Source: Trichosphaerium sp. ATCC 40318 (taxonomy: Eukaryota; Protista; Tubulinea). From it: DNA of 64,000 nucleotides. Shown here in pieces: positions 1 through 5,566 of the stretch (positions within the stretch are counted from its first letter, which is position 1; each line of letters begins with the position of its first letter). The position numbers and the translations under genes were made by a program. The notes under the pieces are model-generated. The model had not been told where the DNA came from. It made no database searches and saw only the letters and a program-made list of their open reading frames with translations. The stretch is taken from positions 27,148 through 91,147 of the forward strand of contig JALMLS010000091.1 in NCBI GenBank assembly GCA_038496445.1. The letters are read 5' to 3'.

Positions 1-1318
1 AGAAAAAATTTTAAACTCCTTACCGTATTGTGCCAAGTTATGTATTACTGACTCGCATTGAGCTGCAAGTTCTCTTGTAGGTTCCAATATAACTGCTTTT
101 ACGCATCTTTGATAACTTGTATAACATTAGTAAATAGTTAAGGTCACTATCAACGTACCCAGCGCGAGATTTTTGATAAATCATTTCCAATACAGGCAAC
201 GCGAAAGCAGCAGTTTTTCCAGAACCTGTCATGGCGCTAGCTGTGACATCTTTACCATTGAAGACTTTTGGTATAACAGCCTATAAAATAAACATCAATA
301 GAGTATTTTAAAACCGGGTAATCAGCCGGTTGATTAAAACAAAACAAAACAGAAAAAACAGCAACTTTTGTTATATTTCGTACCGCTTGAATAGGCATTG
401 GACGTGCCCAGCCTAATTTTTCAATACCGCGTAGTAATGGTTTACATAGTTTAAGTTTATGCCAAGGGATATCTTCAACTTCAGTGACTTTCTAAACCAT
501 CAAAATGTCAAAATTCCAAAAGTGACATTTTATTTTTTTTTTGAAATGAAATTCTTGAAAAAACAAAAAATGCAACCCCTTACCTCTTTACGCTTATCCA
601 TAGCTTTTGCTGCTTTTTCTTGAGCTTTCCTGACTTTTCTTTGTCTTCTTTTCTCTGCTTTTGCAGCTTCTAATGCCTCAGTATCTGGTTCTTCGATACC
701 ATCATCTACGCTTTCATCTGAATCTTCTGATTCTTCATTACTTGATTCTTCTTCATCTGACTCTGAGTCTGATCCAGAGGATGACATATCACCAAATGTT
801 CCCTCAAAATCTGCGTCCTCCTTTATAGCTTGCGCTGCAGCGTCTTCTTTTTGTTTGTCCTTTCGTTTAAAATGAGCTTTAAGGATTGTAATAAAAATAC
901 CATACGCAATTGCGTATTAGTTCAGGTGATGAAATGGCGCGTTTTGTATAAAATTAAAGAGGTTTACAGTTTCTGTCACTTACAACACGTTCAAAACTTT
1001 CACGTATAATGTTTATCTTAGTAGCCAGAGATGTACGATATTCCTATGCGTTATTAGCGAAATTTTACATGTTTTCTGTATAACGGAATTAGAGGTTCAA
1101 ACGTACGTCTCCTCTGTTTGGTTCAGCCATTTTAGCTGCTCGGTCAAAGTTCCAAGCATGTACTGTGTTTTTTCCGCTGTCGAACTCCAATTCGATCTGT
1201 ATAAACAGTGAATACAACTACTTTACAATACGCGAGTAAATTTAATTATACAGACCTCGTCCATGCCGTCGTCATCTACTTCTGGCGTGTCATCGAAAAC
1301 TACGCGTAGGTCGTCCAT
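1..1318 (-). CDS. DRS1: DEAD-box RNA helicase DRS1/DDX27-like, 5' part (multi-exon, runs off window start)
   Basis: Spliced exons give an acidic N-terminus (MDDLRVVFDDTPEVDDD, SDSESDEEE), Q-motif region (LKLCKPLLRGIEKLGWARPMPIQA), Walker A SAMTGSGKTAAFALPVLE and motif Ia VILEPTRELAAQ. Confidence 0.8.
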
Positions 1319-1529: not shown

Positions 1530-4500
1530 ATGTTCACAAATTCGAACCCAGACTTTACGCTCAATGAACCTGGAAACGAGTTTTATAATGACGGTACATT
1601 AATAAGCGAATGTTTTAAACCCAAAATATTCACTGTCAACAGGTTTTGGTTTAGATTTTACGACCACACCTACAAATGATCCTGGAATGTTTAATTTCTC
1701 TCAACAAGAGAATTGGCCAGCCTCAGCAAACAGCGCAAATTCGCTAGGGCAAACATCAGGCCTTTTTAACAGTTCAGGAAACCTACAAGCGCCTGACCTT
1801 GGTGGTAATTTTACAATAAATGTAACGTGCGTGGTTGTGTTTTTTTCATTTTTGTCGCGAAGTTTCTGACTTTCTCAGTGGTAATGGACATCACTCGCCA
1901 GGTGCAACACAGGCGATGGTACGGGTAAAAAATAAAAAAAAAACAACGCCTTTTTGTTGACATGTGTGCTTATTACATAACAGGGCGAGCCAGTATCGTC
2001 TCCTTACTCGGATACACCAACTTCACCGGATTCTATCGAGATAGAGAACACACCTCCTCATTCACCGCCTCAAAACTCCTCAAATATATTTGTCGCTACA
2101 GTTTTACATAAACCAAGGTAAAACGGGCTGTTTGCGTAGTGTTGATGACTTTTTTTTGACGTCCTTTTTTAGAGGTAAAGGTGGTAAATACGTCACTATA
2201 GAGGAAGGTCAGCGTATTAGAGTAACAAGAGATAGAGGTAAACGATTAAGAGTAGTGCTGGAGACTGTTGTGACTTGTGATTGGTCAAATGCTTTTCAAC
2301 TTTTGTTGGACGATGTTAATGAGGACGTATGTATTTTTTCTTAGCGCCCCACGCTAATATTTGAGAATTTTTTTTAATTTATTTTAAATATCTCTGTTGA
2401 TGTCTGACGCCTTTATAGGGGACTGTTATTCAGACATATGATGCAAATGGCCCTGGATTTGATATTGAAGCGAATAGAATGCGTCAATCAACGCCTCTAG
2501 GTAACTAACTAAGGAATCTTATTTTTCTAAATTGTTTTTCGATATTCGGTTTTCTACACTACAAAAAAAGATAAAGTACTATAAACAATTTATAACGTCT
2601 TTATAGGTAACGAGCCTCCTCGATATACTATTGAACTTGAAATTAAAGTATATCTAATACATCGCCGGTTACGATTTCGTGTTTGTGCTTCTAGTACCTC
2701 CGGACAACTGCACGAAGGGAGGACTGTTGAATTTTATACACATGATAGTGGTAGAAGGTCGGTACACTCAATCCCGTAAATTCCCTAAAAGCTCCTCTTT
2801 TTATACCTTATTTTAACGAAAAACCACAAGAAAAGTAATTTTCCCTTTTCTCCTTCCAATTTATAAGGAATCACAATGATGTCATTGTTTTGTTAGTATT
2901 AAAAAAAACTTTCTAGAGGTGATCCAAAAAAGGCTTCTACAAAAACGCGGAACAAAACATCAAGTAATACTCCTGCAAAAGCACCTTCTCGAAAACGTAG
3001 GAGAACTACTAGTGGTCCTGATACTCAATCTTCTGTTGGTCCTTCAAGTTTCTTGATGACGCCCATGTCTCAACAACAAGCTCAACCAATTGTACCACAA
3101 ATGCCTCTTCAACAACGGCAGATTCCACCACAACAGCAACCAATGGCTTTTACTCAAGTACTTACATTTTATTTTGAAATTGAAAAAAATTTCAGATTAC
3201 TAACTTTTCTCGACCCAGGGGATGGCACGTCAACAAATGCCTCAACATATAAATGGTGATTTACAAGTCAACGGTTATGTAAAGGTACGGATTTTTTTTA
3301 GTGACCTCAGTGATTCTTTTTCTGGCGTTTATAATTTTATTTTATTTTTTTCTTATTTTGACCTTAGGCGCATGGATTTTTCCAATATTCTGATGAACGT
3401 CTCAAAACTGATATTACAGATATTGTTGATGCCATGCAAGTTGTAACAAATTTGAATGGTAAAACTTATAAGTGGAAGCCAGGAACAGAGCAAGCGGGTA
3501 CGTTGTTCGCGAATAAAATTTTATTTGCTTTTTACTGGTGATTTTTTTTATCTTATTTGGTTGTAGATGCTCGTGGTGGAGAACGGGTGATTGGTTTTAT
3601 AGCTCAAGAGGTTCAAAAAATTGCTCCTTCAGTTATAAAACAGGTACGATAGCTCGTGCGCTAGTAAATTCCAAAAACCGCCTAAATACTGGTTTTTTTG
3701 TGTTTTTGTTTTGTTGTTTTTATTACTCAATACTGACTGTTTGTAGGCACCTGACGGATTTCTCACTGTTAACTACATAGAATTGCTGCCATATCTTGTC
3801 GAAGCATTCAAGCAACTAGTAGCGTACGTAGTCTCCACAAGCATTTTTCAAAAAAATTGAAGAAATACTACGATTGTTTTGAGTTTTCTGTTTTCTTATG
3901 TATTGAAGCGACCATGAGAAATCAAAAGGAGAAATTGATGGTGATATATCGGCTCTTAAAGCAGATGTAGCAGCCTTACTTTCTAAAAAATCTGAAACAG
4001 ATGATCTAAAGGAACAACTCATCTTACTTCGGAGACGAGTGTCTCGGTTAAGCTATCACGCTCATGGTACGTTTCATAGACAATCAAGCTTTGTCTGATA
4101 CTGTTATAGGTTCCGATGCAGCAAGTGCTAGTACAAGTGCTGGAGACATACTAACAATGAGTGGGAAGCGACGTCTTGTTAAGGCTGAGAGTGACTCTTC
4201 ATCCACTCCTCCTCATAAAAAAAGTAGTAGTAAAAAAAAGAAGAAAAATAGTAAGCTCGCTTATATATCAATTGCATTACTTGCTGCTATGATTGTAACA
4301 GCAGGTCTTATTATTGTATTGGTACGCACTATTTTCTCCTTTGAAAACATTAAAGAAAAAAAGAAAAATCACGTGTTATTCTGAAAACAAACTTACAAAA
4401 CGATTTTTGGTTTTCGTGTTGTTTTTCCACTACTGGAGTTTGAGTCAGGTTTTCTTTTTTGTATTGCGGCAGGTTGCTTATTTTTTTCTAGCTTGTGTTG

Positions 4501-5566
4501 ACTGTGTTCGCTGATAATGACGGTGGTATTGACGATGATATTATATGGACTGCAAACCAAGTAGATAATCCTAGTTTTGAAGCAACAGATATAACAGATC
4601 CATCAATAGCTCTTTTATGGGAATTTACTGAAGGTGTATCAGTAGTAGATTTAGAGTACGTTCAAATAACTTTTGCCCGAATTTGAACTTGTACTTGAGC
4701 GTTTTCGTTTATTTCTTCATTTTCCTTTTGATAGTAGTATGACAAGGTAGTTTAGTACTACTCTGCACTTGTTTTTTTTTTTCCATATTTTCTTTGAGAC
4801 GAAGTTCGATTAACTCTTTTGGTTAGAAATACGCCCGGGATTCCCATACGACACGGAACCAATGTAATAAAGTTGGAGAGTGTTAATGGTACACAACCAT
4901 CTGCTCAACAGTTGGTCGTTCCGTATAGTACAACAAATTCTGGGAGTTACAATAGTGTCATGTTGGCTGGATATGCTTATACAAAGGAGATTGTTGCCTA
5001 TGAAGACTTTAATAGTTACGGTATTATCTTAACTATGGTGTATCAGTATACGGGTGATGGTAGTAATAGTACAGACGCGGAGTATACCATGGAGATAGGT
5101 CTTCCATTCCCTGTATCTGGTACGTAAATTTTTTTTTCCTCTGGAGTCACGTAAAAAACGGCGATATTTGCACGTAGTTACGTGCATGACTACGTGATTA
5201 TAAAACTTGAATATCGCCATGTAAATGGTGCTCGCTACATGTAGTTTTCTAGTTCGCGTAGCGAGTGCATTACTCTTTTTTTTTTTTTGGAAGACAAAGT
5301 AATATCACCACGTTTGTACAACCAATGACTTGCAATCGATTGCATTCAAAAAATTTATGTCAATCATTTTCTGTCGTTACTTTTTTCACTTGCGTAATGT
5401 TGACTGTTTCGCCTTTTTAGATGATTCTGAATGGACTTATAGTGAGTTAGTACAACCCCTTGAAAAGGATGATTACGAACTACGTGCTCTTACAGTGGAA
5501 CTACATGTGACAAGCGCTACAGGCGCAATTTACTTTGACGATATAAATTTGAACTTACAACAATAA
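1530..5566 (+). CDS. MYRF/MrfA-like membrane-bound protein: low-complexity N-terminus, basic beta-rich domain, NLS, Peptidase_S74 (ICA) autocleavage domain, coiled coil, TM, luminal CBM-like domain
   Basis: Joined exons read NGDLQVNGYVK-AHGFFQYSDERLKTDI...GKTYKWK...RVIGFIAQEVQKIAPSVI...DGFLTVNYIELLPYLVEAFKQL (S74 signature); TM LAYISIALLAAMIVTAGLIIVL at about 4258-4320; C-terminal NPSFE...IYFDDINL. Confidence 0.85.

Follow-up and report, generated by a model that had tools for sequence, protein, structure and literature searches.

To our knowledge, MYRF of animals and MrfA of Dictyostelium make up the only class of transcription factors known so far to be freed by a phage-type intramolecular chaperone (ICA), and the domain that is freed is always of the Ndt80 type. 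A gene of the amoebozoan Trichosphaerium sp. ATCC 40318 raises the question of whether this release module also serves a different cargo. The gene occupies positions 1530-5566 (+) of the window, by which we mean the whole 64,000-nucleotide stretch of contig JALMLS010000091.1 that was analyzed, and its product combines an intact ICA domain of the Peptidase_S74 family and a single transmembrane (TM) segment with a basic N-domain that is predicted to be an immunoglobulin-like (Ig-like) sandwich and in which neither sequence, profile nor fold searches detect NDT80_PhoG. Proteins with the same order of domains are found in other eukaryotes. We propose that these proteins may be membrane-tethered regulators that release themselves as MYRF and MrfA do and carry a cargo domain of another kind.

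The gene model was assembled from the DNA as a chain of exons joined at GT..AG borders and was then tested against transcript contigs of public runs. The GC content of the region is ~37% and its six-frame listing yields only short open reading frames (ORFs), which points to a eukaryotic gene with introns. The model has 17 exons and 16 introns, all of which are bounded by GT..AG; its coding sequence of 2379 nt runs from the ATG at 1530, two codons 3' of an in-frame TAA (1521-1523), to the stop codon at 5564-5566 and is translated without an internal stop into 792 residues. The gene is expressed. The locus is present as contigs in four runs (X1-X4, from three studies), and among the junctions listed the contigs of X1, X3 and X4 skip at least 15 of the 16 introns exactly at GT..AG, with several of the same junctions also backed by X2; the intron at 3285-3367 is one that does not appear among them. 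The contigs also reveal a 46-nt mini-exon (1879-1924) and the acceptor at 4826 that follows the donor at 4656. The spliced model is identical, letter for letter, to the database protein P0061 (792 aa), whose cluster mate P0001 (790 aa) is 100% identical over exon 7 in an exhaustive HMMER search with that exon; the source records of both give taxon 498012, Trichosphaerium sp. ATCC 40318, MMETSP0405. Within the mini-exon lie two donors that are in frame and separated by 6 nt, and P0001 is the isoform that uses the upstream one and thereby lacks Val-Arg relative to P0061, the longer form being backed by contigs of X1 and X3.

Two observations were made on the transcript contigs besides. Those of X2-X4 differ from the window by single bases at 1761, 3040, 3951, 3984, 3999, 4933, 4992, 4993 and 5079, positions at which the X1 contigs are identical to the window, and this looks like strain or allele variation; the organisms of the runs carry different codes (A, B, C). 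Run X2 shows a local depth of ~67 at 3565-3846, where ~3 is typical of the rest, and its loose ends at 3693-3725 fall in the T-rich intron 3644-3746; low-complexity or repeat sequence of other origin in that run, outside the transcript, probably accounts for the spike.

The ICA domain claimed by the initial annotation, which had been made from the DNA alone, was recovered by Pfam. Peptidase_S74 (PF13884) matches the whole protein with an E value of 4.1e-16 and 59.5 bits, the gathering score being 22, and it also matches two separate, consecutive exons (E 9e-10 and 1e-4) at consecutive positions of the profile. The FQY-SDERLK site is intact and has its Ser-Lys dyad, Ser382/Lys387, with the same S-x4-K spacing as the S578/K583 dyad of MYRF (PMC3742443). 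The S, D, R, L and K of S-D-x-R-L-K are invariant in 8/8 family sequences (alignment A4), and the G(F/L)IAQEV motif is kept in the family, reading GFIAQEV in exon 11 of the Trichosphaerium gene. Peptidase_S74, the catalytic Ser/Lys and the G.IAQE motif are equally features of the chaperones of phage tail spikes and tail fibres (endosialidase CIMCD, 6f45). When the family ICA profile was searched against the Protein Data Bank (PDB), the phage long-tail-fibre chaperone 6f45 was matched at E 3e-8 and the MYRF ICA 7dc3 at E 2.4e-7, while the best PDB match of the Trichosphaerium ICA as a single sequence was a phage chain (E 3.4e-5, versus 0.34 for MYRF); the S74 exon alone, too short as a query, matched no PDB sequence. 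By its sequence, the family ICA is genuine, yet not specifically MYRF-type, since its profile matches phage and MYRF ICA about equally.

The remaining elements that had been read from the DNA are also present in the spliced product: the S/P/N-rich region, the basic beta-rich domain of ~135 aa, SRKRRRT as a putative nuclear localization signal (NLS), the Q/P-rich tract, the basic patch and one TM segment, the last by a hydropathy scan. The motif INGDLQVNGYVKA is present as well. Upstream of the ICA only a short G.L.V.G.V.A motif is conserved, and the single-sequence model of this stalk has low confidence; a triple-beta-helix may be expected there by analogy with the phage and MYRF structures (PMC8326128). 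Downstream of the ICA, where a coiled coil had been noted, residues 470-521 are probably helical and coiled-coil-like, and a helix at the C-terminus of the ICA is seen in a low-confidence single-sequence model. The poly-Lys patch HKKSSSKKKKKNSK precedes the TM segment and the 792-aa product has no N-terminal hydrophobic signal sequence; because of these two features and the positive-inside rule, a type II orientation with a cytosolic N-terminus is predicted. The C-terminal domain (aa 590-790 in this search) matches no Pfam family at E<=10, MRF_C1 and MRF_C2 being absent, and a word-indexed search with it returns only the protein itself; its sole similarity, which is weak and local (E 1e-4), is to P0004, a member of the family described below. 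What the two have in common, in P0004 at aa 689-724 and at the C-terminal end, is a pair of motifs, W..N...N..FE...P..AL.W at the start and F.DDI.L at the end, which recall carbohydrate-binding jelly-roll modules, although Pfam gives no match.

The protein thus resembles MYRF and MrfA in having an activation-like N-terminus, a predicted Ig-fold domain, a putative NLS, a putative beta-stalk, an ICA, a single TM segment and a presumably lumenal C-terminus, as well as in its predicted type II topology, and differs from them in its much shorter stalk and in the absence of MRF_C1/C2. In the latter respect it is like the proteins of a 2026 survey, which describes seven proteins with NDT80, "chaperone of endosialidase" and TM segments and without the MYRF C-terminal domain, from amoebozoans (four of the seven), fish and sponge (PMC13294678). 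Those proteins were chosen for an annotated NDT80 domain, whereas no NDT80/PhoG domain is found in the Trichosphaerium family. A literature search found no description of a protein with ICA and TM segment whose cargo domain is other than the Ndt80 type.

A key question is what the N-domain is. The initial annotation had seen no Ndt80/PhoG motif in it, and this holds in all the searches that were run. At E<=10, the N-domain matched neither NDT80_PhoG (PF05224) nor any other family in the Pfam copy searched, which does not include PF28397 (DG1062_N, a family of Pfam 38.1), whether it was taken as an isolated domain, within the full protein or from the eight members; its exons searched one by one against Pfam gave nothing, NCBIfam gave no match, and the precomputed Pfam lists of P0001 and P0004 hold PF13884 only. 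Profiles of four and eight family sequences retrieved no chain of Ndt80 or of MYRF's DNA-binding domain (DBD) from the PDB sequences, in which the N-domain has no match. A phmmer search with exon 7 over 1.84 billion cluster representatives found no relative besides the protein itself, a word-indexed search with aa 125-285 returned a self match only, and motif-seeded scans of viral contigs and of bacterial and archaeal genomes yielded no relative of the N-domain. Two further matches of exon 7 in the phmmer search were rejected, one to a bacterial FN3-repeat protein that has only an "FRVCA" strand motif in common with it and the other to a spurious repeat.

Features from a protein language model give a lead of another sort. 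With aa 128-273 as the query, the nearest named clusters are three of DG1062_N (PF28397) from haptophytes and oomycetes (score 0.85-0.88, 167-169 of 256 features in common), followed by clusters of the LAG1, COE1 and SPT23/MGA2 DNA-binding domains; scores of the named clusters range from 0.78 to 0.88, all of them below the look-up threshold of 0.9. Exon 5 alone drew uninformative phage hypothetical proteins, likewise below 0.9. We take kinship with DG1062_N as a lead only, and a literature search on "DG1062" returned only unrelated instrument model numbers. Because the look-up points, if weakly, to this new family, it is uncertain whether the N-domain is undescribed, as had been suggested. SPT23/MGA2, COE/EBF, CSL(LAG1) and DG1062_N are nearest by these features, and no hidden Markov model or structural match to them was obtained. 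SPT23 and MGA2 are themselves factors tethered to the endoplasmic reticulum membrane, which are freed by proteasomal processing and not by an ICA.

With the eight-sequence alignment A3, AlphaFold2 (AF2) predicts for the N-domain a fold of ten strands and no helix (pLDDT 88.9, pTM 0.82), with four of the five models at pLDDT >=88; a single-sequence AF2 model of aa 120-480 (pLDDT 42) was left out of the fold searches. The predicted fold, a confident model, is a V-set-like Ig sandwich. No known DBD family stands above generic Ig domains in the fold searches of this model: Foldseek places the p53 core and the Grainyhead (Grhl2) DBD at E ~5e-4 and TMq ~0.46, level with antibodies and pilins, neither p53 nor Grhl2 is among the VIA top 50, and Ndt80 (1MNN) and the MYRF DBD (5H5P) are in none of the top 50s of three structure searches. 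Shape searches of BFVD and the ESM Atlas gave generic Ig-like matches only.

These results bear on the possibility that the gene is genuinely orthologous to MrfA/MYRF and its N-domain homologous to Ndt80, the Ndt80-type domain having become smaller and diverged too far to be recognized. The host is an amoebozoan, and Amoebozoa have MrfA (PMC3828593) as well as the NDT80-ICA-TM proteins without the MRF C-terminal domain; the MYRF DBD has an Ig fold (PMC5473870), so that the N-domain and the Ndt80 domain are both Ig-like sandwiches at the same position; and the p53 and Grainyhead DBDs do occur among the Foldseek matches. Set against this are the Pfam and PDB profile searches, which retrieve neither NDT80_PhoG nor a MYRF or Ndt80 chain, the absence of p53 from the VIA top 50 and of 5H5P and 1MNN from the top 50 of all three structure searches, an ICA no nearer to that of MYRF than to that of phage, and the missing MRF_C1/C2. 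The sizes differ too, as the N-domain comprises ~135 aa and ten strands with V-set-like matches and the MYRF DBD is an s-type domain of 182 aa with seven core and nine outer strands. We consider an orthologue of this kind unlikely. Since the N-domain is a generic Ig-like sandwich, it may nevertheless be very remotely related to the Ig-fold domains of transcription factors, that of Ndt80 among them.

If the Trichosphaerium protein represents a parallel family of autocleaving factors, as had been proposed, relatives with the same layout should carry the same N-domain, and such relatives were found. A search with the ICA region placed P0004, P0005, P0006 and P0007 far above the background of tail fibres (E 1e-37 to 1e-24), and the first three of them carry the same N-domain. 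Further copies, L001-L008, came from metagenome and metatranscriptome contigs that were scanned with motifs as seeds. L001, L002 and L006 are complete as ORFs, and L007 corresponds to P0006; L003-L005 and L008 are genomic and interrupted by introns, the ICA also lying downstream in L003-L005. At least seven divergent eukaryotic sequences thus share the order of N-domain, NLS-like cluster, ICA and TM segment. Their N-domains are 24-48% identical in pairs, except for one close pair at 87%, and GC content spans 36 to 62% across the family, so that several organisms are represented. The MYRF-like layout and the parallel family with the same order are thus supported, and the status of the domain as undescribed is uncertain.

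Conservation within the family is concentrated in a few places. All seven full-length members have an acidic N-terminus (net charge -7 to -17), which in several includes DDIF-type motifs, a basic N-domain (pI 8.6-9.7) and a K/R cluster, and all continue with G.L.V.G.V.A, S-D-x-R-L-K, G(F/L)IAQEV, helices and a TM segment. The invariant residues of the N-domain (H140, K141, P142, G144, G147, R159, V160, T161, G165, K166, D179, L188 and F245 in P0061 numbering) fall mostly in two elements, the loop HKP(R/K)G and the basic beta-hairpin R.RVT.(G/D).GK, and the domain closes with a near-invariant (T/S)(H/Y)(N/D/S)SG motif; the corresponding motifs of the Trichosphaerium protein are HKPRG..G, R.RVT.(G/D).GK and THDSG. 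The members vary beyond the ICA, P0004 having one TM segment and, on the lumenal side, a domain with weak similarity to its Trichosphaerium counterpart, and P0005 and P0006 having two TM segments each. P0007 (627 aa, from a Logan contig 2603 nt long) begins at the stalk/ICA and is probably 5'-truncated; it has an acidic insertion of ~35 residues in the ICA, one TM segment and a C-terminal region of ~390 aa unlike that of the other members. In a eukaryotic Logan contig from SRR10663366 (L009; 51.6 kb, 52% GC), P0004 is encoded beside a homologue of ARS2/SERRATE by a single uninterrupted ORF of 2.7 kb, so that the family gene of that organism is intron-free, compared with the 16 introns in Trichosphaerium.

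Based on the domain architecture, we propose that the Trichosphaerium protein is a type II membrane protein that would work like MYRF/MrfA, its N-terminal portion facing the cytosol and its one TM segment serving as the anchor. Trimerization would be brought about by the ICA together with the short beta-stalk that precedes it and the helices that follow, and the folded ICA would then cut the chain at the Ser382/Lys387 dyad, the cleavage position being expected next to Ser382 by the precedent of phage and MYRF. The cut would free an N-terminal fragment of ~380 residues with the acidic region, the basic Ig-like domain, the NLS-like cluster and the Q/P tract; this fragment may enter the nucleus by means of the basic cluster and regulate transcription, with the Ig-like domain as the module that binds DNA or targets chromatin in some other way. 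The C-terminal domain on the lumenal side would remain in the membrane, where it may sense or regulate. We regard self-cleaving release as probable, and the chances of the whole MYRF-like chain, including the function as a nuclear transcription factor with a different cargo domain, as evenly balanced.

Where such a protein might depart from this scheme is at either end of the chain. It could self-cleave and set free an Ig-like fragment that binds a protein or other ligand, in the cytosol or the nucleus, and not DNA; most structural neighbours of the N-domain are in fact protein-binding Ig domains, its net charge is modest and no known DNA-binding family matches it. The fold is nevertheless in line with DNA binding, being the fold class of many eukaryotic DBDs, and the combination of a conserved NLS-like cluster, an acidic activation-like N-terminus and an invariant basic hairpin is reminiscent of a transcription factor, as the language-model neighbours, which are DNA-binding domains, also suggest. 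On balance we think a fragment directed at ligands other than DNA rather unlikely. Alternatively, the protein could be a trimeric fibre or adhesin, extracellular or at the cell surface, with its N-terminus outside and its ICA acting only as a folding chaperone, as in phage tail fibres, or the gene could have been acquired recently from a virus and have no regulatory role, given that most S74 proteins are tail fibres, that the Ig-like fold is common in adhesins and that Trichosphaerium is reported to carry many giant-virus genes (PMC10521059). Unlike phage fibres, the Trichosphaerium protein is the product of a spliced gene, expressed and with 16 spliceosomal introns, its ICA is predicted on the cytosolic side of the TM segment and what it carries is a small Ig-like domain accompanied by an NLS-like cluster that the family conserves; the lack of a signal peptide, the poly-Lys patch N-terminal to the TM segment, the motif-seeded scans, in which neither viruses nor prokaryotes yielded an N-domain relative, and the BFVD matches, which are all generic Ig, likewise argue against these readings, and we judge a fibre or a recent viral gene highly improbable.

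The positions of the exons and of the protein features of the Trichosphaerium gene are collected in Table 1. Upstream of the gene, at 530-787 (-), the window also holds an ORF of 85 aa that is extremely rich in Ser, Asp and Glu and then has a Lys/Arg-rich tail.

Table 1. Exons and predicted protein features of the Trichosphaerium gene, in window positions.
Feature	Position	Strand	Residues and basis
Exons 1-6	1530-1593, 1643-1826, 1879-1924, 1984-2117, 2173-2326, 2419-2500	+	
Exons 7-12	2607-2757, 2917-3157, 3219-3284, 3368-3497, 3567-3643, 3747-3823	+	
Exons 13-17	3909-4066, 4110-4321, 4492-4655, 4827-5119, 5421-5566	+	
N-terminal acidic, aromatic, S/P/N-rich region (candidate activation region)	1530-2082	+	aa 1-131; net charge -12; composition
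Basic all-beta N-domain	2083-2752	+	aa 132-270; pI 8.7; interrupted by three introns; family alignments A2, A3
NLS-like basic cluster SRKRRRT	2987-3007	+	aa 296-302; linker around it of net charge +13
Short beta-stalk motif G.L.V.G.V.A	3246-3284	+	aa 362-374; directly 5' of the cleavage site; alignment A4
ICA / Peptidase_S74 domain	3368-3823	+	exons 10-12; aa 375-469; PF13884, E 4.1e-16
Catalytic motif S-D-E-R-L-K	3389-3406	+	Ser382 at 3389-3391 (TCT), Arg385, Lys387 at 3404-3406
Probable helical, coiled-coil-like segment	3909-4066	+	aa 470-521; proline-free, heptad-like
Single TM segment	4253-4512 (4253-4321 + 4492-4512, split by an intron)	+	aa 570-599; hydropathy scan
C-terminal domain, predicted lumenal or extracellular	4513-5563	+	aa 600-792 (193 aa)

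It is a tentative proposal, with somewhat less than an even chance in our view, that ICA and TM segment form a portable self-cleaving cassette that eukaryotes have joined at least two times to different Ig-fold cargos and that the protist cargo is a DBD unrelated to Ndt80. If this is true, the family would constitute a new class of protist transcription factors, which are trimeric and released from membranes and whose DBD bears two hallmarks, the loop HKP(R/K)G and the hairpin R.RVT.(G/D).GK. A second family with the same release module and a different cargo would show that the module is reusable. With it would come a candidate for a new DNA-binding domain and a set of candidate regulators bound to membranes in protists that have been little studied. 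It would also give the MYRF field a natural domain swap with which to ask how trimerization, cleavage and DNA recognition are coupled.

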